From Botryllus schlosseri (lineage: Eukaryota): a DNA stretch of 64,000 nucleotides. Made by a program: the position numbers and the translations under genes. Positions 812-51,851 of the stretch are shown one piece after another. Location: contig CM119375.1 in the NCBI GenBank assembly GCA_051294905.1, positions 15,500,001-15,564,000 of the forward strand. Reading direction: 5' to 3'. How positions within the stretch are numbered: position 1 is the stretch's first letter; each line of letters begins with the position of its first letter. Below the pieces are notes generated by a model that saw only the letters and a list, made by a program, of their open reading frames with translations, was not told where the DNA came from and searched no databases.

Positions 812-2674
812 CTATCTCACATCTGACGCAACCAACTATTCATCAATCAACTATTAGTGAGAAAAAAGAGTTATAAATATTATAGTAGCCTTCAATAAAA
901 TTGCTTTAGACTGTTAAATGGGTCTCATCGAATTTTCAGGTTGGCCACCCACCAGCAATAAGATTACTCACAAAAGCATCTTAATCAGTTTCGCTTTCAA
1001 GATATCAGATGGCGTAATTGATGCTTACAAATGTTCGAATCTCAATCTGTCCTAATTTTCCAAGCTTTTTTACGCTCATCCACAGGTGCAAAAACCTAAG
1101 CAGCTAGTCAGTACCTGAATATTGCGCATTGGCGGAAGTTTGAATAGACCTTAGTATGCAGTACTGTCTCACTATGCTCGCAAAACCTGTTAACAATCAA
1201 CCAACAAACGAAAAACAGTGGAATAACTGCCAGCAAAGGTGATAGCAGTACTCCACCACGGCCAACATTACTCAATGAAGTGTATGCAGTCAACCTTATC
1301 CGCGCACACGTTGATTTCGGCGGGAGTAAACCTTACAGCGTTAGGGGGCGTGGCAGTTTCCAATCATTGTATAATGTATATATATCATTGGCGCTCAGCA
1401 ATCACTGATAGCATGGATGAGAATAAAAAAACGGGGGTGCAGACTAGATGACCTTGCTATAAAGGTCGTATCGCATCTTTGTCGCCAAAGCATCTCGATG
1501 CTGCGGGCGAAAAAAGAATTAATATATCTACTATCTCTCTCTCTCCTCTACTTAAGTAGGCCTACGAGCCGGGTGCGAGTAGAAATAGTGCTTTTCGAAG
1601 CAGCCGAAAACGATTTCAAGTAGAAGTAGAATTTACTGGCTTTGAAAACTACTCAAGTAAGTATACCGGCAGTCGACGAGCATGTCCAGTGTCCACATTC
1701 AAGTCGAAATACAAACAATTACTACTAAATGAATACAGTCCACCTTCAAGATTACCGGACCACGACTGACCTATCGATCTCGCTTCCCATGACATGCCGC
1801 CCTATTCTTGTCGCTTTCTTTTTCTATACTATCTTCTTTACTTTCATTCAGTGTGCAATGTGCATGCCTCCTCTTTACATCGCCTAGGCCAAGGTGGGTG
1901 TCCGATTCCATAGACTACTCCTAGTCGCTTCGACATCTTCCTGTCATTTCATTGTATCGCATTTTTTGTGGTGTATTGAACTGATCAAATTGCTAACAAA
2001 CCAATGATGATGATGCAAAGTATTCGTAAATACGCTCTATCATTGACAGTCAAAACGTTTAACTGACAAGCAGACGTTGCAGAGAACTGGGTTCATATTT
2101 ATCAATTGCATAAGGATTCGACAGCAATATATGATGCGAATGATGGCTTTGTTATAGAGCAGTGGTTCTTAACTTTTGTACGCAACGCCTCTATCAGAAA
2201 ATAAAACGGTATGCGCACTCCCCCGTATTATAATAAGGCTCGTGGTTAATTTAGCGATGACCATAACAATGACCCGTTGCGAGAGAGAGAGAGAGAGAGT
2301 CTTATTGCGACTCTCTGATTGTTCGAACAATGCCGATATTTCGACTTGGAGGACGGATTCTAGGTGGATCAGTGCCTGATCATTATTTTAATTTATATTT
2401 TCGAAATCGGTGCAACAGTGGCTTTCGATCAAGACCATATTCAATAATTTCTGTGCTCGTGAAGATAGCTTTTGGATTGCCAGAAATCCTACAGTCGCTT
2501 ACGCAAATCCACTCTCCACTCCAGCCTCGGCGAAGCGGAACGAAGCTGCAAAATCGGTCGTTGCCGTTCCATGTTTAATTTCTATACTTTAACGCTCAAA
2601 AGTGGAGTAGGGGTTAAACCCGCTTAGAGGCCAAACGCCAGACGCCAAACGCCGAGCGGCGGCCAAATGTCTGT

Positions 2675-2895
2675 ACGGCGTTTGGCGTCTGTTATGGTGA
2701 GACGCCGAGTAGCTATACGGCGTTTGGCGTCTGTTATGTTCAGACGCCGAGTAGCTATACGGCGTTTGGCGTCTGTGATGTTCAGACGCCGAGTAGCTAT
2801 ACGGCGTTTGGCGTCTGTTATGGTGAGACGCCGAGTAGCTATATGGCGTTTGGCCTCTGTTATGTTCAGACGCCGAGTAGCTATACGGCGTTTGC
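2675..2895. repeat. Subterminal tandem array of a 42-bp unit with an internal hairpin (5 full copies plus a partial); degenerate inverted copies at about 6838-6945
   Basis: Unit acggcgtttggcgtctgttatgttcagacgccgagtagctat starts at 2675, 2717, 2759, 2801, 2843 and 2885. It contains the inverted pair ggcgtctg-N7-cagacgcc. Confidence 0.95.
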
Positions 2896-3077
2896 CCCCG
2901 ATTGGTGTCTCGATAAACTGAGCAGAGGCCTAATCATTTCATGGTGCGACTATCAAGTTCTCGCAACTATGTGATATCTAAGATTGCAAGTTGTAAAATT
3001 TTTGTCATAATAAGCGGTGGCAGAATCCCAAATGATCTATTGCATGTTCAGCTGTATCAAATTATTGTATCACCGCC

Positions 3078-3450
3078 CACGGTTGCAATGAATCGAGTCA
3101 TGACTCGACTCACTTTCTTAAAAATGGATTTACTCATTGTATGACTTTTTAAGAATGGTATATCGGGACTGATAAATAGGCTCAAACCTGCCTTTTATCT
3201 GTTACAATAACCATGTTTAGAATGGAAAAAATGAAGATAAAAATTATCCGAGACCTTCGATATCACCCCCACGAGTTCCACAGAAGTGATCTGAAGCTGA
3301 ACTCTATGGGGAACAGTAAACACCATGACTTGGACTCGACCCATTGCTCTCAGGTTTGACTCGTTGGGGATTGCTCGGACTTGACTCGCCGGTGAATTGA
3401 AAACGACTCGACTTGACTTCTTGAAACCTAGTGAATCGGTTGCAACCCGG
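3078..3450. mobile_element. hAT-type MITE (GACTCGAGTC-rich family) nested in the 4.4-kb element
   Basis: Ends cacggttgcaa / ttgcaacccgg; 8-bp TSD tcaccgcc / tcaccacc (7 of 8 match); repeated gactcgac/gacttg motifs. Confidence 0.7.
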
Positions 3451-3511
3451 TCACCACCCCATATTTGTACACTCGCAATGAATTTCAGACCCAAGTCTGC
3501 AGATACAGCAT

Positions 3512-4266
3512 GTAATGAAACCACAATATGAAATGGGCAACGAAACCACAGCAGAAGGCAATGAAACCACGGTAAAAGTCATCGAGAAATAAGAAGTGGA
3601 ACCACAGTAAAAATGACTGAGAAATATGCATTGCAACCATAGTAAAAGTCACAACGAAATAAGCAGTGGAAACACAGTAAAAGTCAGAGAAATATGCAAT
3701 CAAACCACAGTAAACGTCACTGAGGAATCAGCAGTGGAACCACAGTAAAAATGACTGAGAAATATGCATTGCAACCATAGTAAAAGTCACAACGAAATAA
3801 GCAGTGGAAACACAGTAAAAATGACTGAGAAATGTGCATTGCAACCATAGTAAAAGTCACAACGAAATAAGCAGTGGAAACACAGTAAAAGTCAGAGAAA
3901 TATGCAATCAAACCACAGTAAACGTCACTGAGGAATCAGCAGTGGAACCACAGTAAAAATGACTGAGAAATATGCATTGCAACCATAGTAAAAGTCACAA
4001 CGAAATAAGCAGTGGAAACACAGTAAAAGTCAGAGAAATATGCAATCAAACCACAGTAAACGTCACTGAGGAATCAGCAGTGGAACCACAGTAAAAATGA
4101 CTGAGAAATATGCATTGCAACCATAGTAAAAGTCACAACGAAATAAGCAGTGGAAACACAGTAAAAGTCAGAGAAATATGCAATCAAACCACAGTAAACG
4201 TCAATAAGAAATCAGCAGTGGAACCACAGTAAAATTGACTGAGAAACAGGCAACGAAACCACAGTA
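3512..4266. repeat. Minisatellite of 33-35 bp monomers organised as a 138-bp four-monomer higher-order repeat
   Basis: The tggaaacacagtaaaagtcagagaaat monomer recurs at 3667, 3875, 4013 and 4151 (138-bp period, with one extra 70-bp dimer at 3805). The edges are degenerate. Confidence 0.9.
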
Positions 4267-4286
4267 AAATATAGAAGCATCAGAAT

Positions 4287-6673
4287 TCACACCACAGTAC
4301 ATAGCATGCAATAAAAATCATCATCAGGATCAGGTATCCGCTGTCCCGGGCAACAGTCCTCGTGTGTCCATCGACCACAGCCGTCACACGCAACCTGGAA
4401 ACAAGTTAGAATCAATATACCCGACGAATGTAATCTCGTAATTGCATACCCATTTCATGTCTTTTTTTGGGGGGTCTTGACTACCGCATTTAATGCAATA
4501 ATCTTCCAATTCTTTCTCATCTGCGGGAGAAACATGCAACGTATTTAATATGGTTTTAACCTGACATGGACCAGCATACCCGTTGCATCAAGCAAAATTT
4601 GACCAAACTGCTGGCGGTAGCTTTCGCAAGCTTGTTGAGAATGATCAAAATCCAGGTTTGCATCGGGGATTGATAATCCAGTGGTTAAGTAGAGTTTGGC
4701 AGCCTATTAAGTGTCAGTTGATTGCAAATTAATTTTCTCAAATCTCAATACATGAACGCATCACAAACCTTCAAAGCAAGGACTCCACAATTAAATCCGT
4801 CATTTTGAACACCGGTCCTTATTAATCCTGTATATCTCGCAACTGATTCTCTTCTTGAGTACGTTCGTATAAATTCGCTGGATTAATACAGAAATGAAAT
4901 ATGTCTCTTGAATACGACCTCATCAACTTACTCAAACTGTTGCAAGACATTCCCATAGCGATCCTCGTGGCCCATTGGATCGTATAGTAGAACCATATTT
5001 GATTCAACGTCAGATACCTGAAAGAGTATATACATACATTACACTAATACAGAATATACTGACGAGACAGAACATGGGTGGAAGGGGTGAGAAGCAATGA
5101 GTTTCACAAACTTACAATATCAAGGTAGAATCTGACAGGTATGGAACATGCTTACCAAAAGAATCCAATGGTTGCCCCTGCCCACACCAGTTCCGCCACA
5201 ACGAACATTAAGTGGCGCTACAAAAGATTTTGTAGCTGCTTCTTTCTAGAGTGAATCACTAAATTAGAGAATATTCAAAAGTCTTGTTACTATTACACAT
5301 ACTGTTTTCTTTTTGCCAGAGGCAAATTTCCCAGCAACAAACCAATTAGTAGCTAGCAGACAGGAAACAACCATTGTATGACCTTCCGACTGAAATTACA
5401 AGCTTTAAATAGCTTTCAGCAACAAAAAACTTGAGCAAGGCAATGACTTACTTTTTCATTGAGGGTCCCAAAAATTGATATACAGTCTTTGTCTTCACAC
5501 CCAATCAGGCTTCGTAATAAATGCTTCGTAACGTGCAAAGGAGCAGCTTGGCCTGATGATCCTTGCGAGACCATAAACACACCATTTTTCGGATCAATAC
5601 AAACTGCAGGAAGGGTTGATGGATGGCCGTGGGCATCTCGTTCATGTCTTGTCAAGCCATGAGACCTTGCATATGACTTGTCGCATTTGGTGCATTGCTT
5701 TTTACTTTTGCTATCTGCTGGTTGATTTAAACGACGAGTCTTGCTTTCCTTGTTTGGTGGCGGATTGCCACATACTTTCTGTAAATGACTTTGAAATGTA
5801 CCACGTCGACCAAGAACTTTAGTGCAGGTATGGCAGTGGTAGTGACTCCTGCCTCTGGCCTGACCAATACGTTCCATACACTTCAAACGGCATGGTACGA
5901 TATAGCCTGGAATATGTGAATACAATTAGATACACAAGGGTAAATCCATGTCAAATCAACCACACTCCTATCCACTCTCCACTCCTATCCAAGTAGTTGA
6001 GAGTGGATTATAGTGTATAATGATAGAATATATTGAAGGAAAAATTTCTCCCAATCAAATTGATCATGCATAACATGAACTAGCGCAATTATGTCTACAC
6101 AAAAATTGGAAATTAACATGTCATAATTATGAGAGCTGGTTCAGAGAGAAACATGGCTGACTCCGCTGACATGTCTTGCTAACTAATATTTGATGGGTAT
6201 AAGTAGCCTACCTCAAAATTAATCAACTTTACATAAATACTTCTGAATCCATTGGGTAGGCCTACCGGTTACAATGCAATTTGAGATTAACCACAGCAGA
6301 GATTGGTTCACTCTCAAGTCTCAGATTTTTCTGAAAATTGCCTCAAAACATGAATTCCAGTTTTCAAGTAATCGCAAGCCATGATAATATTAAGCTTTTT
6401 AACACTCAGTCTATTACCCATAAATCACAATCGAGTAGAGATTCTTCACTAAGGAATGCGACATGGCTATATACTCGGGTAAGATATTTACAGACCTTGC
6501 ACTTCGTTGTCGATATAGTGAGGTACACGATGAGCCCAGTGTACCGCCTCGATATGCTCATTTAGCTTTTCTGACGTTTTGAACGTGTTGATTTCGCAGA
6601 GACCGCAATTAAGTTCTTCTGTTATGATTCTAATGAGGTGTGTCAAATCCTCAGTTAGAGCAATCGCTGTCAT
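4287..6673 (-). CDS. 435-aa spliced protein: C2H2-type zinc fingers + Ulp1/SENP-like C48 cysteine protease + PHD finger (transposon-encoded)
   Basis: Nine GT-AG exons with matching phases and no stops: 6673-6496, 5906-5452, 5389-5303, 5245-5156, 5017-4932, 4877-4769, 4703-4580, 4520-4450, 4394-4287 (1308 nt). Motifs: CGLC..HIEAVH, CHTC..H, CTKC..HERDAH; PLNV..NHWILL, LLYDPMG, VQNDGFNCGV (His, Asp, Gln, Cys); CIKC..W-VACDGCGRWTHEDC..YCMLC (C4HC3 PHD). The start codon is tentative. Confidence 0.85.
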
Positions 6674-7380
6674 TGCTGCAAGAAAACTCGATAATCATAA
6701 GCATCTAAAGACGTCTACCATAGTGTTCTATGTAGCAGACATCCTTTGTCTGTCGGCGTTAAAGCTCCCAACTTCGACTCTCTAGCAATCCCTGAGAGTG
6801 ACTACCCTCATATAAGATCCTATACGCTAGACAAATTCAGACGCCAAGTAGCTATACGGCGTCTCACTTTTCGGACGCCAAACGCCGTATAGCTACTCGG
6901 CGTCTACGCCATCTAGCGTCTCCGTTCAGCCGCCAAACGCCGTGTAGACATTCGGCCGCCGCCCGGCGTCTGGCGTCTGGCGTTTGGCCTCTGAGCGGGT
7001 TTAACCCCTGTTGCAAAAGTGAAGACCCAATTTTCCAGTAGACATCCGCGAATGTCCGGCACCGGTTGATGACATTACTACAACCACAGCGGCAGGTATA
7101 TCTATAGATCACTAACCATAGGTTAGTAATCATCTATTGTATATCAGTTGATTCCAGGCATAGGAGTCGAGAGCTAACATTCCGTTGTTCGCACTGGATG
7201 TTTACTTACCACCCAGTGCAGTTTTAGTGATTTTGCGCGATGGATGGCATTCGCAAGGGCGAAATGGACAGGAAAAGTTATGTTTCTTTCTGTATGTATT
7301 TTCTCTCTCAATAAAAAATAACCAAAAACCACTCATTGTTTAATTACTATATAATGTGCCAACGCAAATTCGGCTATAGC

Positions 7381-8769
7381 CAGGGTTGCCATACCGTCCT
7401 TATTTCTAAGATTTGTCCTTATTTTGAAGGGCCACGTCTTAGAAAACTCAACTGTCCTTATTTCTAAGAAATGTCCTTATTTTCGACTTGCGTCCTTATT
7501 TTGTCTTATTTTCAACCGCTACAGAACTTCGATCGTTTCCCTCTAGTATCTGTGTTGCATAATATTCTAAAATTATGATTTTTCCTCGAGATTTTATGAC
7601 ATCATAAATGAAAGGAACTCTCGTGACGTACACATCGCAAGATTTGACTTCTAAGTGGTGAGATTGCTAGGGCATTGAGTGGTGGTAGGCATATAGCAGT
7701 TTCGTCTGTACCAAGCTACCGCAGCGGACGTAATTTTAGCAGTAAACAGCAGTACCAGGTTCCTGTTGTTTGGTCTACAGTAGAATAAGCTCAAGCTGTG
7801 GGGAAGGCAGCATTTATTGCGTTGTGAAAAAGGCGCAGTGCAGTCGACACATTTGTTTAAAAGTAGTAAAGCTATAAATCATTGATATTTTTTTCTAAAT
7901 TATATTGCACTTGCGCATATAGTTTTAGCTACAAATAAGGCTAAATCTGACTAGTTTAAATGAACAGGCGTAAAAACGTTTTTCGTGGCGATTATGAGCG
8001 AGAATTCAAAGGTATCTAACGAAACTTGAAGGGCGAGTGTTTCGCACATAGCAATATCTGCAATTGTGACATTAACCTAGAGGCCATAGGAAAGACCGCT
8101 ATTTCAAGTCACATTGATACCCCAAAACGCAAGAAGTGTGTCATGATGATTAATTTGAGTCAGTCGATGAATAATTTTTCCGCAAGTCGATCAGCACCAA
8201 CGACCACAGACTATAAGGCAGCTGCTGCAAATGGTACGTGGGCATTCCATACTGTCAAACACCAACAATCATTCCTCACCAACGATTGCTCATCGCAAAT
8301 GTTCAAAGCAATACTGCCCGATTCCAACATTGCAAATAAGTTTGCTTAGGTCAGGACCAAGACTACAAGCATTGTTACTGGAGTTCTTGCTCCATACGCT
8401 CAAAAATTATTTTGTCTTAACTTGGTGTACGGCCTCTTCCCTCTTGGTTGACGCCTCTAACGAGGTAAAGATGTTTGGTTCATTATCCGAGGGGGTGGAT
8501 AGGGCAATACCAACAGTTTTTTTGGGGGGCTGACGAAGTGCTGTTTCGGCCCTGAGTAAAGGTAAACAACTTAGACCTGAGCTGTCATGATATACATGAA
8601 GCACTTTCTAAAATCAAGGAGCTGCTCAAGCAGATTGTTTCTGGTGTAAAGTATGGAATGTGATATGCCACGGCTCGTATAAATACAAAGTATGTACAAA
8701 AACGCTTTTTCATGTTAATCTAATTTTTTTACTGTCCTTATTTTTGGGTCCATGCCGATGGCAACCCTG
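7381..8769 (+). mobile_element. Internally deleted hAT transposon with a degenerate transposase fragment
   Basis: 12-bp TIR cagggttgccat / atggcaaccctg; perfect 8-bp TSD GCTATAGC; subterminal gtccttattt repeats. Fragments at 8026-8600 read CNICNCDI..SH, TWAFHTVKHQQSF..NDCSSQMFKAILPDSNIANKF*..RTKTTSIV and DASN (first catalytic Asp region), with stops and frameshifts. Confidence 0.85.
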
Positions 8770-9593
8770 GCTATAGCTGTAGTAAATGACGGACTGCGTT
8801 AAGAGTAGCCTATGATGTCACTTCGCAGTTCAGACTAAGACCACGAATTCAATACTGTTCTGTCTTGTTGGAATGGTTGATAATGATAACAAACATTATG
8901 CTTGAATTACACAAGTTCACTTTACTGTGAATGTGAAGTAGTGCCGGCTGTATTAGTATTCATAGAGGAAAGGGCATGTCACCATAAACTGCTATAGTAG
9001 TATACCTATTATCCAAGGACATGGATGCTTATGTAATATGTTATTTTATTAACATGCCAAATTGGTATTGATATGTATATTTCAGTATAATGATATCTAA
9101 ATATCAAATAAGGTACCGTATACACTTAGAATTGTGGTCTTTTACGGCTAGCTTGGTTTTACGCGCGGGTATATAATATGGATAATTTGACATCGTGATA
9201 TGATGCATAGAATACAAGCTCTGTAATTCTGCTTGGCTCGCAGTAATATTTCAGGTTATGTCTTGATGCTTATTTTAAAATACAGGTGTCATTCAGATAT
9301 CGTTAAATTTCAACAACTGGAAAAATAAATATTTCACTCGGGATATTTTTTACATGTGATTTACACTTCCGAATCTGTGTTTGAAGCTTTCAAGTCTTTC
9401 TTCTTGAATTTCTCAGTTCTCCGATTTGTGACGAGTCGTAGTGAATTATAATTTGCTACAAACACTTGATGGATCTGCGAGTTGCTTCGAATCGAAAAGC
9501 GCGCGACAGCTAAAGTGGGTGTCATCTTTTCAAGTTTGATGGATCGCATCGACAGTGAAAGAACGTGCGACGTTTACACAAGACTCTGGTACG

Positions 9594-12290
9594 ATGTGGC
9601 CGAAATGCAGGAAGTTAATCAGTTTGAAGAAAGGTGCCAAGTTTCTCGGGGGAGTCGGCATAATTCTGCTCATTTACTTCTATTTTTCACAAGACGGACA
9701 GTATATTGAGATTCCCAAGTCATCAAGCGACTCGTTACAAAACGATGACGACTCGTGCGATCGACCTTTTGTCGATAACTCACCGGCGATTCATTCGCGC
9801 CTTCAGTCCGGCTCATCACTCAAAACTCGACAACACATACTCCTCTTCCTAGCAGATCAGTATTCGCGGGATGGGAAAGCGATAAGGTACATGCTCGAAG
9901 CTGCCAGAATGAAGTACCATCCTCAATATGGCACTGTTAAATCTTTACCTTCGTTAATCGATGACGAAAAAGGCCGCTTCATGGTTATCATATTTGAGAC
10001 AGCCGAAATCTACTTGAAACTCTCAAAGTGGAATCGTGAAATATTGGATAAATACTGCGTCAAATATGACGTTGGAGTAATACTTTTTATCCCACCGTCG
10101 AAAAAGAAGCCTCAAGAGTACGTGGAGATCCAGCGTTTCGGCAATTTTCCGTTATCATATACTGCGAACCTCGACATGAAAGACGCTGTCATCAATCCGG
10201 AATCGAAAGTATTGCGGATAACCCGTCCTGGAAAGCAAGTCGATGGCAGCATCGGCAAGGGCTGGTCTGTCTTCAAATCGAACCACAGCACTTATGAAGC
10301 TGTCGTGTCCGGGTTTTTGTCTGATCCTACCACCGCCGGTAGAAGTAAGTTTTTCGCGGGGCAACTTATGGACTTGAATTCGGAATCGAATCCATCTGAA
10401 AGTAGAAAAGTATTCAAAAAGGCAAAAACAGCTCATCCAATCATGATCGTTGACAATGGGAAGCACGACAAAATCCGTAGGGTGATCTATGGAAATAATC
10501 TGGGGTTTTGGCTGTTCAAAATACTATTTATGGACGCTGTCAGTTTTTTATCGAAGGGGAAGTTATCGCACCCGTTAAATCGTTATATACAGGTCGATAT
10601 CGATGACATTTTCGTGAGCGTCGAAGGCACTCGAATGACAAAGGACGACGTCATGAAACTGGTCGAGTTCCAAAGCGACATGCAAAGCAAAGTCCCCGGT
10701 TTTAACTTCTTAATCGGTTACTCGGGCAAATTTTTTTCGCACGGCAACGAAGCCGAGAATCTGGGAGACCGTACTTTCCTGGAGCAAAGCCACCGTTTCC
10801 AGTGGTTCCCGCACATGTGGTCGCACATGCAGGCTCACCTGTTCGGCAATTCAAGTTACCTGTGCGATTACATGGAGCCTAACAGGAAATTCGCCGTCAG
10901 GCATAAGCTGAACGTGTCGAGCCGTTACGCGGTCGCGCCTCATCACGCCGGAGTTTACCCGGTACACGAGCCTTTGTACGATTGCTGGAAAAAGGTTTGG
11001 GACGTCGACGTCACTAGTACGGAGGAATATCCGAATCTTAGACCTGATCAGAATCGCAGGGGATTTATATACAGAGGGATAAAAGTGCTGCCGAGACAAA
11101 CGTGTGGCTTGTTCACCCACACGAATTACCTTGAAAAGTACCCAGGCGGTCCCGATAAACTTGATTCTCTCATAAACGGCGGTCAGCTGTTTTTGACCGT
11201 CCTGTTAAATAAATACAACATTTACATGACTCATTTCTCCAATTACGGCAATGACCGTTTAGCACTGTATGTCTTTGAAAAGCTGATAAAGTTCGTGCAG
11301 TGCTGGACGAATTTGAGGCTGTCTCAAATACCGCCCGCTGACATGGCGCGGAAGTATTTCGAAGAATATCCTCAAGAGGAGACTCCGATTTGGACCGACC
11401 CTTGCGCGGACCCGCGTCATTTGGAGATCTGGTCGAAAGACAAATCCTGCGAGAGGTTGCCAAAATTTGTTATCGTTGGCCCGCAGAAAACTGGCACTAC
11501 CGCGTTGCATTGGTTCCTTCAAATGCATCCGGATTTAAAACCGAGCAGGCCGAGCCCGCGAACTTTCGAGGAGATTCAGTTCTTCAACACCCCGAATTAC
11601 CTAAAAGGCCTGGACTGGTACATGGATTTTTTCCTGTTTCCCGAAACGGGCGGGGACACGTTGCTGTATGAAAAAAGCGCAAACTATTTCAGCAGCCCCG
11701 TGGCGCCTCACAGGCTGCACGCACTGCTACCTCATTCTCGCGTCGTAATTTTATTGATAGATCCAGCCAAGAGAGCGTATTCGTGGTACCAACATATGGT
11801 GTCTCACGATGACCCTACTGCGCTTAACTTTTCCTTTCATGACATCGTAAAAGCAGGCATTCGATCTTCGCCTGCGGTGCTTGCGCTGCAAGCCCGTTGT
11901 CTTTTACCTGGCCGGTATGCGGAGCACATTGAAAAATGGTTGGAATATTTTCCTCCGTCACAAGTCATAATCGAAGACGGGGAGCTGTTAGCGAAAAATC
12001 CTATTCCCGTACTCGAGAGGCTTCAGATCTCCTTGGGTGTAAAAAACATTCTCAACTACTCGCAACATGTTCAATACAACGCCAAGAAGGGCTTTTATTG
12101 TAAGATCGGAAACTCCAATAAATTGGACTGTCTGGGTAAGGGAAAGGGTCGGGAATACCCCGATATGTCAGAGAGGTCTCGCGTGTATTTGAAGGCGTAT
12201 TACAAGGAGTCGAACGAAAAACTGGCAAATATTTTGAAACGGATGAAGAGACGGTTCCCAGATTGGCTTCAGGAATCCATAGACGCCTAA
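9594..12290 (+). CDS. NDST: Bifunctional heparan sulfate N-deacetylase/N-sulfotransferase, single coding exon, about 898 aa
   Basis: First ATG of the 9555-12290 ORF is at 9594 (MWPKCR..), followed by a type II TM segment. Deacetylase motifs DIDD, WFPHMWSH and APHHAGVYPVH; sulfotransferase 5'-PSB GPQKTGTTAL, EEIQFF, EKSANYF, PAKRAYSWYQH and CLGKGKGR. Confidence 0.97.
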   Translation: MWPKCRKLISLKKGAKFLGGVGIILLIYFYFSQDGQYIEIPKSSSDSLQNDDDSCDRPFVDNSPAIHSRLQSGSSLKTRQHILLFLADQYSRDGKAIRYMLEAARMKYHPQYGTVKSLPSLIDDEKGRFMVIIFETAEIYLKLSKWNREILDKYCVKYDVGVILFIPPSKKKPQEYVEIQRFGNFPLSYTANLDMKDAVINPESKVLRITRPGKQVDGSIGKGWSVFKSNHSTYEAVVSGFLSDPTTAGRSKFFAGQLMDLNSESNPSESRKVFKKAKTAHPIMIVDNGKHDKIRRVIYGNNLGFWLFKILFMDAVSFLSKGKLSHPLNRYIQVDIDDIFVSVEGTRMTKDDVMKLVEFQSDMQSKVPGFNFLIGYSGKFFSHGNEAENLGDRTFLEQSHRFQWFPHMWSHMQAHLFGNSSYLCDYMEPNRKFAVRHKLNVSSRYAVAPHHAGVYPVHEPLYDCWKKVWDVDVTSTEEYPNLRPDQNRRGFIYRGIKVLPRQTCGLFTHTNYLEKYPGGPDKLDSLINGGQLFLTVLLNKYNIYMTHFSNYGNDRLALYVFEKLIKFVQCWTNLRLSQIPPADMARKYFEEYPQEETPIWTDPCADPRHLEIWSKDKSCERLPKFVIVGPQKTGTTALHWFLQMHPDLKPSRPSPRTFEEIQFFNTPNYLKGLDWYMDFFLFPETGGDTLLYEKSANYFSSPVAPHRLHALLPHSRVVILLIDPAKRAYSWYQHMVSHDDPTALNFSFHDIVKAGIRSSPAVLALQARCLLPGRYAEHIEKWLEYFPPSQVIIEDGELLAKNPIPVLERLQISLGVKNILNYSQHVQYNAKKGFYCKIGNSNKLDCLGKGKGREYPDMSERSRVYLKAYYKESNEKLANILKRMKRRFPDWLQESIDA

Positions 12291-17900: not shown

Positions 17901-17942
17901 CCACAAAATAAACGTCTGCGGGCCGCGGGTTGAGAACCCCTG
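14938..17942 (-). mobile_element. 3.0-kb degenerate Buster/SPIN-like hAT with nested insertions
   Basis: TIR caggggttctcaac / gttgagaacccctg; perfect TSD TCCTACTG. Minus-strand remnants TDASFKIAWNMAKP, DESTN and a GAEP-like degenerate DGA motif at about 15300-15850, with many stops. Confidence 0.8.
16040..17493. mobile_element. 1454-bp non-autonomous hAT nested in 14938-17942
   Basis: TIR cagtggttccca / tgggaaccactg; perfect TSD CCCTAACG; a longer relative of 14081-14530. Confidence 0.88.
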
Positions 17943-22127: not shown

Positions 22128-25100
22128 TCAGAAGAACCCAGGCTGGTATGCAGCATCTAAGGCCGTAGATTGTCCATTGACTTGGTTACCAGCGCCCAAT
22201 TCACAACACAAAATCTTCGAGAATGACTTATCTTACCGGCGACGGAGTAGGACGTCCCGACTGCTTCGCCATATTTGAGTCGGCAGAGACAGAGGACTGA
22301 ACCTGCAAAGACGATAACTTGGTCTTGAGAAGCATCAGCTGCTCTTTCCTGGAACAAAAAGAACACCAATAGAGCTAAACAATGCTTGGAGCCGGTCAGA
22401 GTGGAATGTGGAAGCGAAACTGAAGTTGAACTAAATTTCAGAGCCAGAACAAAATGAAAAGCATGCGAGTAGTAGTTTCAGAAGGGAAGGGAAAAATAGT
22501 TTGTGGCACTCTCTAGCACTTCTAGTGGCGAGTAGCCAAGTGGTTTGTTTTGTTGCACCAGTGCACCTATTCAAGCACTCAAGTAGAAGCACTCACTGCC
22601 TCTGTCGATTAGGTAAAGTCAAGCAAAAAGATGGATTCTTGCCTGTGGGTCATTGATTCGATGGCGCGCTCCAAAGAGTCGTTGTCTTCTCGAATTTTCT
22701 TCAGCGCGACCATTAGCGACGACACTGAAAAGACACAGAATTCCACAAATCAACGCAACAGACAGAAAGTTCTCTCTTTCACGGTCAAATTCGGTGTTTT
22801 GCGTCTCATGTCGGGAGGCGTCCCACAGCAAAGTTTATCTCCTGTTCCGCGCATCTGGTCTGGCCAAAGCTAGCAAGCAGATAGTAGATCGCATAATTTC
22901 GAATACCTCACAGGCCGAAAGCGGTCAATGCACTCGATAACACTGCTCGCATAAAAGCAGCAAAGTAGAAACGATGCCATAAATCGACACTAGATTACAA
23001 GCAGTGGCAGGATTACACCAGTTCTATGCAATTGGTCAACAAAATTTACGAGACGAGCGAGCTGGTTACTGTCAATCCCCTTTTGTGACAGAGCCTGACT
23101 GACAAAAATTTGAATTTCACCAGTCCAGTGATAGCAATTATAAGTATTATTTTCAAGACATGTTCTAACTCTTCCAAATGAAAGTAATAACGGAAGGTCA
23201 GAAGTACGCGAGTCGGTAGTTTCACAAAGTAGATTTAGTCGAAAGATCGCAAACTTCGTCAGATAATCGTAATCAGAAATAGTTACTTTCGCAGTTGAAT
23301 CTTGCATTATGACAAATGCAGAAAAAAAACCTACTGCTCTGAAACAACAGAAGCATTGAAGTTACTGACTGACACTTTTTTAATCCAACCAAGCCCACCT
23401 TCGGAATCGGTGCCATCTTCGCAAATAAACTTGAAAGCATCCGCTATTTGATCGTTCATCATTTTCTCGAAAGCTGTCAAACCATCTCCGACAATATCGT
23501 TTTTGAAAATCCTACGTCAAACAAAACAGTTATCGGTGGAACGCGAAACAGACGCACAGGCCTCGAACCTGTTATTTTCCGCTGTGTCGAGAGGGTCGCA
23601 GGCGTCGCTGCGGTCGAGACCCAACATGTCCAAGGTGGCGAAGCTTTGGCGCGGATAAATCGCGGTGCCCGTCTCCTCGGATTGGTCGGGGTCCGTGGGC
23701 TGGGGCAGAGTGGGACGGTGAGGTATGAAACCAGACAACGGGGCCTGAAATGGACGAAATCAAGTTAGCATAGTGTCGCATTGAACGTTGCTAGCAGATA
23801 TGAGAGGATTCAATATTTTTAACGCTAAATCCGGATTTGGGAATCAAATCCTTCATCTCTGGCGACGGCTGAATCTTCATTTGAAATTCCAAGGTTCGAA
23901 TCTATATCCACAGTTTCAAAAATATCCAATAATAATCTCTCCAAAATTACTGAATCATTTCCAAATCCATGCGTAATTACGCATCCCTGGTTACGAGCCG
24001 ATGGTGATGATAACACAACACCAAGTCCAATATTTAAGGGGGTAAGATCACGTTTCACATTCCTTACCTACACAGGTGCCATATGCAAACAACAAAGCAT
24101 TTTTTTTTTTTCATATCCGCAGTGTCACAGTCATAATTCCACCGGCTTCACTGTTGAATCATCAAAACACACTACAATAACTTGCCCATGGATTAAAGTG
24201 ATGGAAGGTAGAATACCGTGGGCATTATGAGCACCGCAAAAATACGGTACTCGAGCCCAGAGATGGTCAGTAGCGAAGCAGAGCAGGCTACTTTAATTTT
24301 TTGGAGTATTCAAGTACGCTTTGGCTACTTGCACTACTTATGTAGTTACAATTTCAATTTCTCAGATTTCAGTATTTTAGGTAAAATTAGGCCTAGATGA
24401 CTTGCTTTTTATTTACTTGGAAATCGCTAAGTCTACCTGTGTGTGAGTAGCAACTTCCAATACTTCTACTTGAGCACCGATAATGACTACATTGACCACA
24501 AAATCGCCGATATCGGTAACTAACAATTTCGGTGTGGCGTGGTGGTTTGATACTGCTCAGTACTGGTTAAAAATCACTGATGTTTACAGACATGAACAAA
24601 ATCTGACCTTATTCTTCTTAATTTGCTTTCTTTTATCTTTCTTCAAGCCTGCTGAATAAGGCAATTTGAAAAAAACTGTATTGCGGGCGTACAACATTTC
24701 ACGTTACCCCTGCCGCCATCTTTCAATCTCTTGTTGGAGGCGACAATCTTTCCATCTTTTTTCGGACGCTTCAGAATCGTTTTCGTTGCTTCTGAATTCG
24801 AATGGACAATTCAATTTCAAAGTATGGCTCGGCAAGTCTGCCTCCAAACAGACGCCAATCATTTCGACTATGGGTAGCAGGTGGCCTAGTATTCATTGAG
24901 GGCACGATTGTATTGTATTTACTTCAATTAAGAGCGTCTCAGTGCTGCGAGAGCTCTTGAAACATATTTACCCTATCATAAGGTACTTCATGGGCGAAGT
25001 GCTGTCATTCTCAAAAAAAATTGTAGCAATTACATCGTGGGTTCCACGCAAGAATCAATTGTATTTATTCACCTTAACACACAGTGATAAAGCCAGATAA

Positions 25101-34100: not shown

Positions 34101-35010
34101 AAATGTTTGGAGGGATTAGTGTTTCTTTTCAAATTAATACAATCGAAGCCAATCCCACCAAAATTACAAAACAACATAAGTTACTGAAGGCTATAGCGAC
34201 TAGGGTAACCGTATTTTGGAATCGGGAAAGGAGAACACTTTTTCAATATTTTCAGACTTACAATACTACGGGAGTAAAATCCAGGAAAAAATGGTAAATT
34301 TACTGCGAAATTGTGGTTGGTTAACTAAAAATAAGTTTGAACCATGAATTTCCTGTTTAGAATCATTTATGCCCAATTTCACACGAATCTATCTATCCTC
34401 TTAGTACTAAAGCTGTCAAGATGGACAAATCGCCAAAAAGGACTTTTAGGCGTCCTCGGAGGACATTTTCAAAAACCTGAAAAAGGAGGACGTATGGTAA
34501 CCCTAACAGCGACAACACTGTTGACTAACGCGAGAGTCCAAAGCAATTTACAACATTTATGGTGGGTCAGATCAAGATGACCTTTTTCTGTCGGAATTTC
34601 AGTCCATGTTGGTCGCTCATGTAATACAACTTACACAAACACAATCACGATAATGTTGCTACATTAGAAATAAATATACACCCTGATATTGATACAAGTG
34701 AAGGGCCAAGAAATACTAATCCCGTCAGGCCGTCAACAGCAAGTGTGAAGTGAATAATAAACAAATAACTATGCATAGCATATAGGATACTATATTGAAA
34801 CAATTTTTCATTCGCCATCACTAATAGTACTGTTGGTGTACGGGCCGGTAAGCGATTAGACGATATGGTAACGAATAATTGCGAATCTTGAATACCTTGA
34901 TGAACAGCAACATTACAGGACTCGCCATCACAGTAGACAAGGGGATTTTCTGTCCATCCTCTTTCATCGAGACATACGCAGCAGCCACCCAACATAGGTC
35001 TATCTGACAT
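22128..35010 (-). CDS. MLLT10: AF10/AF17 (MLLT10/MLLT6)-like protein: N-terminal PZP (PHD-Zn knuckle-PHD) and C-terminal OM-LZ; middle and last exons only partly resolved
   Basis: Exons 35010-34896, 33972-33893, 33827-33773, 33708-33599, 33491-33388 and 31152-31023 splice to MLGGCCVCLDERGWTENPLVYCDGESCNVAVHQACYGIVKVPDGPWFCRKCESQERAAKVKCELCPHREGALKKTDSGGWAHVVCALYIPEV..KYCGYCKAH. Exons 23744-23569, 23511-23399, 22724-22643 and 22348-22237 give FEKMMNDQIADAFKFICEDGTDSEVSSLMVALKKIREDNDSLERAIESMTHRKEQLMLLKTKLS. Likely low-complexity exons lie at about 26070-26790. The last exon is uncertain (22142-22128 or about 20650-20546). Confidence 0.9.
28512..29366. mobile_element. hAT (Buster-type) MITE
   Basis: TIR caggggtgggcaaact / agtttgcccactcctg; TSD ctctatat / ctttatat. 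Confidence 0.85.
29886..30503. mobile_element. 618-bp almost fully palindromic (foldback) hAT-type element
   Basis: Arms of about 280 bp are near-perfect reverse complements (tagggctgttcaaaaataac.. / ..gttatttttgaacagcccta); perfect TSD CTGTACAT. Confidence 0.93.
31404..33040. mobile_element. 1637-bp foldback hAT-type element with about 650-bp terminal inverted arms
   Basis: 31404-32059 is the reverse complement of 32390-33040 with scattered mismatches; spacer about 330 bp; ends tagggttgtcc / ggacaacccta; perfect TSD TTGATCAT. Confidence 0.93.
34201..34505. mobile_element. hAT-type MITE (gtcctctttt subterminal family), in AF10 intron 1
   Basis: Ends tagggtaaccgt / atggtaacccta; TSD atagcgac / acagcgac; related to 36492-36860. 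Confidence 0.75.
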
Positions 35011-36114
35011 AATTAGAAACTGCGGTATGAGCACAAAGTTTCCAATCATATACCAAATCAATTGCACGGGTGTGACTCGTATGAGCCTGTCTTGTAGTTT
35101 GCAAAGTAGAGGCCTACAATCAGATAGGCTACCTAGTGACACAATTCTTGGTGCTATTATTTGCTGCATTTCGTACTGGATACTCATTCTTTGTATATAT
35201 ACTTAATATTAATACAGTGCAAGCCAGAAGCCCAAAACTCACAAGGAACCCGTCAATCGCTTTTGCGGATCCTTTAATAGATAGTTTTATTTTGTATAAT
35301 GACTGCAGTCAATGGTGCTTCTATAAAACTCGAATTTCTCACTTGGTATGATCGAAGTGTAAAGACTTCCTACACTATTTGACTCACAGCTCGCGTGAAA
35401 ATAAACAATAAAACATAGTAAAGCCGACCACATAACGGACCGAGTTCGAAGTCGGCGTTCAGAAGTCCGGATTTTTATCGGATCATTGAACCATGAGTGA
35501 GAAAGGGCCAATGCCACGGTTGACTTTGGTCAAGACGGCGTGGGCTAGCACTTAGCAGTACGTGCAAAACAAAGTGATGGTGACCTACTTTGGATTCTAC
35601 TTGCCTAGATATGAGTATATCTGTACCTTTTCTTGCGGCGTTAAAAAATGCCCAGAGAAAGACCCGATGACGGACTAATGCAAAGAATACAATGAAAAGA
35701 ACGAGGGATCGTCGAACGCCAGACACCAAATCAAGATCGACGGCTGTTATATCAGGCATTAATAATGATAATAGCTGTAGGCAGACTTGAATGTTAAATT
35801 GCAAGACCTTACTTCGTCGTTTCGACATCCTCCTATCTGTTCATTACATCGCATTGTATCTCGGGTGGATCAAAATGATAATGGTGATGACAGTGGAATT
35901 ATTGAGACTCTTTCGTAGGATCATAGCATGGTTGAATACAAGAATATCAAGTACAGCTTACGGCACATAGCGGTTTGTAAAGGCTATGGTTCAAATCACG
36001 GTTGAAGTGCGGACTGAGGGTGTTGTTGTCGAGTGTAGCCATTTGTGACGCAACAATACGTGTCTATTTTTTTACTCGCAACATTTTATATCTTCCTTCA
36101 CTAAAACACCGAAA

Positions 36115-50231: not shown

Positions 50232-51851
50232 TTATTTGCAAGCTTGATTCATACCGCTTTGTATATGAGCAATGTGAATTTCGACATTGTTTTGAAAAGA
50301 TTCCGTGTTCTCGTTCATAATTTTTTGTTTGATATTGTTCATCGTGTCTGTAATCGCTTTGAACTCGAACGGATTGGCATTGTTCTCTCGTAAAAACCGT
50401 ATTTGCATCATAATGCCAGTTAATTGTTTCACTAAATTAGTCAGGCTGCTGTTTTTAACGGCGTTTTTTCCGTTGGTCGTTTGATTCTTGGAGTCCACCA
50501 TACGGTCCGCGGTATCCATGGCCGATTGCCGAATCTGAGAGACTTGGTCGCAGAGTATCGTACTCTCAGGCGATAACTCCTTACAGAACTTCTGTATTCC
50601 CAATATCAGAGCATTGAGATCCTTGTTCAACCTTTCGAGATCGATAATAACGGTCGCGTACTTACGCTGGAACTCGATCGGCAAAGTTTCGCCGTAAGAC
50701 TGACTTTTCTCGGCTTGCGAGTTCATCTCTTTTAAAACCTCCAGATTGTCTTTCTTGATGGCTAAAATTTTCGAGAGACGGGCCACCTGAACCAAAAACG
50801 TAACCGGGAATCCGCCTAGAGTGCCACCGGGAAAGGATGCTAATTTACTACGAGCTGGTGACTGACCTAAAACAGGGTCATATTCTATCGGCGGGCTGTT
50901 GTAACCATCATGAAATTCAGATTGCATAGGCGAGAACGCGTTATACAAAGGCCGTTTTCTTTCCATTAGAGAATGCAGCTGGATTGTTTCTTGTGGTTCC
51001 TCACTTGCGACTTCAATATCAGGCACTTCCCTACTTCCGATATTCCTCCGATCGAACGTAATCCGGTATGATGAGTTTGTGACATCCACAGCGTCGATTG
51101 TGCCAGTGAATAGCCCTTCGTGCGCGCCCCGTAACCTGGCCGTGACTTTAGTCCCGAGAATTAAAGACATCGGGATTTCTTTGGGGAGATCGCTGAAGGT
51201 AGCATTGTCTTCAAGAACATTTTTCCTCTGTTGCAACATTCGAATTTTTTGACGCTTGCTCTCTAAAGCGTTGCGTTCTTCCGCGAAAAACGCTTCGGAA
51301 CACCGCCTCGGTTTGCCCATAATTCTTCTGATTTTTGACCAGTGAGCGCGCGTAAGACCTTTTTTACTGAGATTCGGAAACGATTCGTTTAAACACACGA
51401 TGAAGTCGCTGTCGCCTTCAAAAAGACAACGGTCTATGTTGGAGTAAAACCACTCGAAAATGCACATCTTATGAGCTTTGGGCAGTTTCAAGAGATTTTT
51501 CAGTCTCACGCCGATTTTTCTGGCGGTAACGCGGTCAGGGGCAGTGTTTGAGACGTTATGGGAGAGCATGGAGGAAGAAGTGGCTTGATCCGAGTCTATC
51601 GGGTGCATTCTATCGACGCTGGTGACACTTTCGACATCCGAAGATTCAGGTTCTTGTTTTTCAGATAAGCTGGCGAGAGGGCTGTCTGTGATTTTCATGA
51701 CTTTTTTCTTTCTGAACTTCCCCTCCTCTTCGCTGGATACCTCGTCGTCGCCGTAGTAGATCAGTGTATTCCGTTTTCGATTTCTTTGAGGTCTGTTCGG
51801 GGACATGTTCAAATTCGACTCCCAATTCATGGCGTATGAGGTCCTCGTCAT
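50232..51851 (-). CDS. LIN9: LIN-9 homolog (MuvB/DREAM subunit), single coding exon, 539 aa
   Basis: DIRP domain LKNLLKLPKAH..FEWFYSNIDR..W..IRRIMGKPRRCSEAFFAEER; Tudor-like GTKVTARLRG..GLFTGTIDAVD..YRITFDR; C-terminal EFQRKYATVIIDLERLNKDL and NNVEIHIAHIQSG. Confidence 0.95.
   Translation of the reverse strand: MTRTSYAMNWESNLNMSPNRPQRNRKRNTLIYYGDDEVSSEEEGKFRKKKVMKITDSPLASLSEKQEPESSDVESVTSVDRMHPIDSDQATSSSMLSHNVSNTAPDRVTARKIGVRLKNLLKLPKAHKMCIFEWFYSNIDRCLFEGDSDFIVCLNESFPNLSKKGLTRAHWSKIRRIMGKPRRCSEAFFAEERNALESKRQKIRMLQQRKNVLEDNATFSDLPKEIPMSLILGTKVTARLRGAHEGLFTGTIDAVDVTNSSYRITFDRRNIGSREVPDIEVASEEPQETIQLHSLMERKRPLYNAFSPMQSEFHDGYNSPPIEYDPVLGQSPARSKLASFPGGTLGGFPVTFLVQVARLSKILAIKKDNLEVLKEMNSQAEKSQSYGETLPIEFQRKYATVIIDLERLNKDLNALILGIQKFCKELSPESTILCDQVSQIRQSAMDTADRMVDSKNQTTNGKNAVKNSSLTNLVKQLTGIMMQIRFLRENNANPFEFKAITDTMNNIKQKIMNENTESFQNNVEIHIAHIQSGMNQACK

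Follow-up and report, generated by a model that had tools for sequence, protein, structure and literature searches.

Elements that carry Ulp1-like genes reportedly include the Kaonashi (KI) Mutator-like elements (MULEs) of Arabidopsis, whose ULP-like genes are said to have been described by Hoen et al. in 2006. The KP repressor of the P element is an internal-deletion copy that has the DNA-binding head without the catalytic core, VANC of the VANDAL elements is an element-encoded, sequence-specific anti-silencing factor, and arrays of short repeats in transposon ends are the usual binding sites of transposases. The animal transposases of Ginger1 and Mutator have a C-terminal Ulp1 domain and, in some families, a PHD finger, for which a role in transposition or DNA repair has been proposed (Bao, Kapitonov & Jurka 2010, PMC2836005). 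The same paper cites ULP-like genes on Arabidopsis MULEs, and Ulp1 and PHD riders on transposases are already known (PMC2836005). Zisupton elements are characterised by target site duplications (TSDs) of 8 bp (PMC12730594). The 64,000-nt stretch of Botryllus schlosseri DNA analysed here (contig CM119375.1 of assembly GCA_051294905.1, forward strand, positions 15,500,001 to 15,564,000; referred to as the window) has at 2605-7013 a copy, approximately 4.4 kb in length, of a cut-and-paste transposon bounded by terminal inverted repeats (TIRs), which probably belongs to a Zisupton-like (KDZ) family as a non-autonomous, internally deleted member mobilised in trans.

Like Zisupton/KDZ, the element has an 8-bp TSD, TIRs and a gene for the N-terminal domain found in CxC4-bearing proteins, the full-length relatives of which have a Ulp1 domain on their C-terminal side. 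Unlike full-length Zisupton/KDZ, this copy is without the CxC4 cluster, the SWIM-like finger and the core, and its head is followed at once by an abbreviated protease part and a PHD finger. It has in common with Ginger1 and Mutator a Ulp1 domain, there sometimes accompanied by a PHD, which rides on the protein of an animal DNA transposon, although these are other superfamilies with the domains on an intact transposase. As with Kaonashi, transposon copies carry and amplify a Ulp1-like gene, but Kaonashi belongs to the Mutator superfamily of plants, has longer TSDs and an N-terminal domain that is not of the KDZ type. Like KP, it retains the DNA-binding head of a transposase with the core gone, whereas a repressor role stands here by inference only and the product keeps a protease-like part and a PHD. 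The likeness to VANC is one of idea only, that of an element-encoded factor acting on its own chromatin.

The TIR arms (2609-2691 and 6927-7009) are 83 nt in length with a complementarity of 92%, and weaker inverted homology continues beyond them to approximately 170 nt. The TIR tip GGGGTTAAACCCGC occurs at just two sites in the 64 kb, 2610 and 7008 (reverse complement). The outermost 5 nt of the element (GAGTA on the left, preceding GGGGTTAAACCCGC, and CAACA on the right) match at 2 of 5 places only, and with these included the left TIR occupies 2605-2691 on the plus strand and the right TIR 6927-7013 on the minus strand. Exact 8-bp copies of CAAAAGTG lie at 2597-2604 and 7014-7021, both 5 nt away from the perfect TIR core. 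This is the sole 8-mer direct repeat among 225 offset pairs tried, for which the chance expectation is 0.003. Independent support for the right boundary comes from an RNA contig of another copy (sequencing run X16), as this tracks the right end to 7014 and then enters a different flank. The TIRs of about 80 bp, the perfect 8-bp TSD and the limits of the element given in an initial annotation are all borne out, the TSD and TIR positions being in agreement.

The element encodes a gene on its minus strand with nine GT-AG exons (1308 nt, 435 amino acids), the introns of which are 589, 62, 57, 138, 54, 65, 59, and 55 nt long. Its reading frame is free of stop codons, as had been claimed from the outset. 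Exon 1 (6496-6673) contains the start codon and encodes an initial C2H2-like finger. Its counterpart by homology is the first exon of the transposase gene located on a genomic Logan contig of another organism (L001, 1-4739), and the intron position is shared. Exon 2 (5452-5906) encodes two C2H2 fingers and a conserved beta domain. A search with its 151 amino acids found 130 related proteins among 1.8 billion representatives (best phmmer E-value 2.8e-38). The domain common to these consists of a C2H2 finger followed by CxD..G..V..G...PxHV..CE...C, the residues C, C, H, H, D, G, G, P, H, C, and C being invariant or nearly so; the same applies to C71, C74, H87, and H92 across 48 relatives. AlphaFold models two C2H2 fingers (predicted local distance difference test, pLDDT, ~90) along with a less certain beta part, and Foldseek matches to this head model were DNA-binding C2H2 proteins only. 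The C2H2 Pfam score of 22.4 bits is below the cutoff of 25.2, yet with two fingers modelled and their ligands conserved in relatives the C2H2-type fingers of the initial annotation can be retained. The CxC4 cluster, described as associated with KDZ transposases, is present in 7 of the 61 relatives scanned. By homology, exons 1 and 2 are assigned to the N-terminal zinc-finger domain of KDZ/Zisupton-type transposases, and the head, together with the 8-bp TSD, upholds an earlier lead toward Zisupton. A word-indexed protein search with exon 2 gave no match in the allowed length range, and a profile search with alignment A3, which was dominated by its first row, returned fish relatives of one protein (P0016) only.

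No transposase core was detected in the window by tblastn with the 130 relatives (including P0091, P0010, and P0017), the matches of which were confined to exons 1-2; the remainder of the element is composed of repeats and filler, as anticipated by the initial claim that it has no transposase. The relatives show what lies between head and tail elsewhere. Protein P0091 has the N-terminal domain (26-214), CxC4 (420-528), and Peptidase_C48 (987-1194) within one 1389-amino acid open reading frame (ORF). Two further loci, L003 (on an annotated chromosome) and L004, have the head, core, His box, Asp box, and Cys box all encoded by the same strand, with a PHD also in L003. The best matches of exons 4, 5, 6, 7, 8, and 9 in L003 are in perfect order, at 17905, 17991, 18199, 18401, 18823, and 19579 respectively. 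In these three full-length relatives the head, core, and Ulp1(-PHD) are found in one gene or gene string, with Ulp1 downstream of the core and no second N-terminal domain ahead of it. The full-length order deduced from these sequences is an N-terminal zinc-finger domain, SWIM-like and CxC4 clusters, core, Ulp1, and PHD in one long protein. This order suggests a single long protein of the Zisupton type as the ancestral architecture, and the 435-amino acid product is, by this comparison, predicted to be the head of such a protein joined to its tail.

The KDZ element of L003 also has long inverted arms (6810-7961 and 23774-24198) with tandem repeats of ~197 bp, its right arm running beyond the fetched locus. 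These inverted tandem-repeat arms resemble the inverted 42-bp repeats of the element described here. No TIRs were found around P0091 in its locus (L002), and there was no gene record for P0010 or P0015.

The tail of the protein begins with exon 3 (5303-5389), 29 amino acids of uncertain origin. It has no significant counterpart in L003 or L004, may be a remnant of the C48 Trp helix, and is followed by an intron that is spliced in RNA. Exon 4 (5156-5245) has the His box GNHWILLV, exon 5 (4932-5017) the Asp box LLYDPMG, and exon 6 (4769-4877) the Gln/Cys box VQNDGFNCGVL, which is homologous to the Cys boxes of L001, L003, and L004, while exon 7 (4580-4703) encodes the last part of the protease-like domain as well as a linker. 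The candidate catalytic residues are H266 (NHWILLV), D283 (YDPMG; His+17), Q323, and C329 (QNDGFNCG; Gln+6). The order and spacing of their motifs are as in the Peptidase C48 family, and the boxes are kept in L001, L003, and L004 (the His box reading NHWKLLV in L003 and GNHWNLLV in L004). With phmmer, the His/Asp box aligned to the His box within the Pfam C48 domain of P0091 (E-value 0.03, single target). Peptidase_C48 accounted for 72 of the 100 best named clusters (score 0.88) when exon 6 alone was compared by the language-model features of the Atlas, which is to be taken as a lead only. Other searches were negative, with no match to the C48 profile PF02902 in Pfam exon by exon, nothing relevant in PDB sequence searches with exons 5 and 6, no BLASTP match of exon 6 to the C48 region of P0091, no match to the Atlas features of exon 4, and P0091 itself as the only result of a protein search with its C48 region.

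The distance from the head domain to the catalytic His is at most 54 amino acids here, versus ~83 residues (~90 profile positions) in P0091; at least ~37 of the ~90 C48 profile positions before the His are missing. In L003, the His is preceded by a Trp-helix exon and a further exon without counterpart in the element. A Ulp1/SENP C48 fold had been proposed for this protein; its His, Asp, Gln, and Cys motifs are in place, but a complete fold is unsupported because the part before the His is much shortened. On these sequence features, the abbreviated protease part could be either active or inactive. The PHD finger that follows is complete, as previously described, with all eight C4HC3 ligands across exon 8 (4450-4520), which has the first half (CxxC), and exon 9 (4287-4394), which has the second half and the stop codon. 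Exon 9 alone reaches the Pfam cutoff (PF00628, 24.5 bits against 24).

Four sequencing runs (X1, X5, X16, and X23), all of which behave as RNA, were placed on 4280-7300. It should be mentioned that Logan contigs may follow mixed paths through near-identical copies and drop rare variants. Spliced joints were observed for introns 3 and 4 (X1 and X5 each), intron 5 (X1, X5, and two reads of X23), intron 6 (X1 and X16), intron 7 (X1 and X5), and intron 8 (X1, X5, X16, and six raw reads of X23). Of the eight junctions initially predicted, introns 3-8 are therefore seen in contigs or reads, but introns 1 and 2 had no spliced joint in the four runs. Other copies, 95-100% identical, are present at other loci with their own flanks, and expressed sister copies part from the locus at ~4293. 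The family is multi-copy and transcribed. It also has a transposase-type transcript, since exon-2 contigs ~98% identical to the locus (7-10 differences in 457 nt) read past 5452 into NPGVQCDHLD, which corresponds to NPGVPCIHI, the stretch that follows in the nearest relative (P0001) and leads to its SWIM-like motif. Expression of this particular copy found no support; at five diagnostic positions in exon 2, the raw reads of X23 have the other letter in 6/6 to 10/10 cases and the letters of the locus in none, although the RNA runs and the assembly may come from different strains. The depth of X23 across exons 3-5 is almost nil. Coding differences from the expressed sister copies (6 synonymous, 8 non-synonymous) are not numerous enough to demonstrate constraint.

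A stretch of 70 nt in exon 7 (4597-4666) has an RNA depth of 394-443, approximately 10-fold above its neighbours, and transcripts over it lack ~24 nt (4667-4689) and then splice into diverged exon-6-like sequence. The high depth points to a much more strongly expressed Ulp1-PHD paralog, possibly a domesticated or active copy. Three raw reads of X23 jump 186 nt at 4392-4579, as though exon 8 were skipped, and have 1-3 additional letters where the two sides join; they probably derive from a paralog. In other copies seen in the RNA runs, 76 nt are replaced by 19 nt and the subterminal repeats occur in several spacer variants (6847-6924, 6874-6905), which indicates several distinct copies of the family.

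Among the explanations considered, a deletion derivative, which the initial annotation had listed as an alternative, is the best fit, as both halves of the protein match full-length KDZ genes in order. The lost segment would begin just past the N-terminal domain and end within the protease domain, its removal probably being due to a deletion from intron to intron that kept the frame. The sequence downstream of the stop codon would also have been lost, with satellite now in its place. This array (3558-4269; unit 35 bp, higher order 138/208/346 bp) starts ~18 nt past the stop codon of the 435-amino acid gene. Since there is no catalytic core, movement would occur in trans only, through a full-length transposase that is produced at another place and binds the arrays of GGCGTTTGGCGTC in the ends. 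These arrays comprise 5.3 tandem units of 42 bp on the left (2674-2894, plus strand), each with the 13-mer GGCGTTTGGCGTC, and inverted units on the right (6836-6905, minus strand), where tandem variants are found at the same place in other copies. The 13-mer has 14 matches in the window, 13 of them within the two ends of the element and one, a loose match, in the other 60 kb, against 0.65 in shuffles, and is a candidate binding site for the N-terminal domain. The 435-amino acid product, should it be made, would attach to these same arrays by way of the head that it has in common with the transposase. It would most likely be a competitor or modulator of the full-length transposase, as are other truncated transposases, and could also bring the normal activity of the Ulp1-PHD tail. 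A self-targeted anti-silencing mechanism had been put forward for the protein; no finding here bears on SUMO, silencing, or chromatin, and this role is without support.

Several observations weigh against an internal deletion as the origin of the gene. The homology with the transposase-type transcript breaks exactly at a consensus donor (AAA/GTAAGT), which requires both breakpoints of the deletion to lie in introns. No full-length partner with these TIRs was seen, the reading being limited to this window. A second expressed lineage is also present, in which the same junction of exon 2 and exon 3 is kept in frame with a diverged exon 2. Contigs having exons 6-3 with zero differences from the locus run upstream into this exon-2 end, which reads ...DCILFALNEK where the locus has ...DCISIFGTLNEK, is less than 95% alike to it, and differs by an in-frame indel of two codons. 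The kept junction may be a sign that the short form has long been maintained as a type of gene and is not a one-off.

The fourth point is the gene order on L001. This contig has the end of a gene with a Ulp1 Cys box and PHD at 46-618 and a KDZ transposase gene collinear with residues 26-808 of P0010. The last four Ulp1-PHD exons are 109, 106, 71, and 92 nt long versus 109, 124, 71, and 108 nt for exons 6-9 here, with equal phases (exon 8 having its counterpart of 71 nt), and their spliced alignment reaches a score of 214, where shuffles give 29.8 ± 5.3. The Ulp1-PHD end lies 500 bp upstream, not downstream, of the start of the transposase, on the same strand, with no inverted-repeat junction found between the two. 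This order may reflect a two-gene arrangement.

It is on this basis that a conserved accessory gene was considered, in which the 435-amino acid protein (head, Ulp1-like part, and PHD) is encoded by a gene A beside a transposase gene B, and this element has lost B. Gene A would then aid the family, for example by deSUMOylating chromatin factors at the ends of the element, the anti-silencing idea. In addition to the near-identical exon lengths on L001 and the diverged expressed paralog with its in-frame junction, the conservation of His, Asp, Gln, and Cys in L001, L003, and L004 speaks for this arrangement, as does the position of the satellite, which takes up the place, downstream of the stop codon, that B has in L001. 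Nevertheless, L003, L004, and P0091 have Ulp1 downstream of the core without a second N-terminal domain, the 5′ half of the upstream gene is not visible in L001, the protease part is without much of its N-terminal subdomain, and the constraint implied by the 6 synonymous and 8 non-synonymous substitutions is not significant. An accessory gene is rather unlikely on balance. A broader form of the proposal is that the short form is not debris: within a KDZ/Zisupton clade it would be a second gene under conservation, or else a regulatory lineage that propagates itself, in frame in at least two diverged lineages of this genome, beside the transposase gene in L001, and directed to the 13-mer arrays at the ends of the element, where it would change transposase activity or SUMO-dependent chromatin. 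This is regarded as improbable. The donor break, the diverged lineage, and the order in L001 keep a two-gene or maintained-short-form reading alive, if only as a doubtful one.

The same RNA contigs allow for a recent chimera, in which gene conversion or recombination would have brought exons 1-2 from a transposase gene, exons 3-9 would stem from a separate short-form Ulp1-PHD copy, and intactness would be a matter of youth only. Exon 2 is ~98% identical to the transposase-type transcripts, while exons 3-6 are 100% identical to a contig with the diverged exon 2 and its indel, and no read or contig in the four RNA runs joins exon 2 of this locus to its exon 3. However, the capacity of Logan contigs to mix near-identical copies and drop rare variants, and the possible difference between the RNA-run and assembly strains, tell against reading this as a true junction of two sources, and a chimera is considered unlikely. 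A host gene domesticated from a transposon, its inverted repeats and 8-mers having no present role, would suit the intact ORF, the conserved catalytic motifs, and the ~10-fold RNA depth of a related exon-7 segment, but with TIRs and TSD intact, other copies of 95-100% identity at other loci with their own flanks, and its own letters absent from the raw RNA reads, this is very improbable. Capture of a host gene was ruled out, since both halves of the protein match parts of the KDZ transposase genes of relatives.

As an internally deleted, trans-mobilised copy, the element would represent a clean, dated case of Zisupton-like decay, in which in-frame loss of the core leaves the head tied to a Ulp1-PHD tail. 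Short forms of this kind, if maintained and expressed, would act as natural regulators of the family and would also provide a handle on why many animal transposases carry SUMO-type proteases and PHD fingers, a question that has been open since at least 2010 (PMC2836005). The present value of the copy is mainly in annotation and as a pointer to the full-length partner.

The remaining ~620 bp of the element (2937-3557) is non-coding filler, which has two matches of 38-39 nt elsewhere in the window. A miniature inverted-repeat transposable element (MITE) had been proposed for this part, but nothing beyond a 15-nt inverted repeat was found. Elsewhere in the window, a 180-amino acid ORF on the minus strand (34645-35187) has no Pfam match. 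An uninterrupted 911-amino acid ORF on the plus strand (9555-12290), ~2.5 kb from the right end of the element, encodes a heparan-sulfate N-deacetylase/N-sulfotransferase (HSNSD_N, HSNSD-CE, and Sulfotransfer_1) and appears to be an intronless host gene. A single 539-amino acid ORF on the minus strand (50232-51851) encodes LIN9 (DIRP and LIN9_C) and likewise appears to be intronless.

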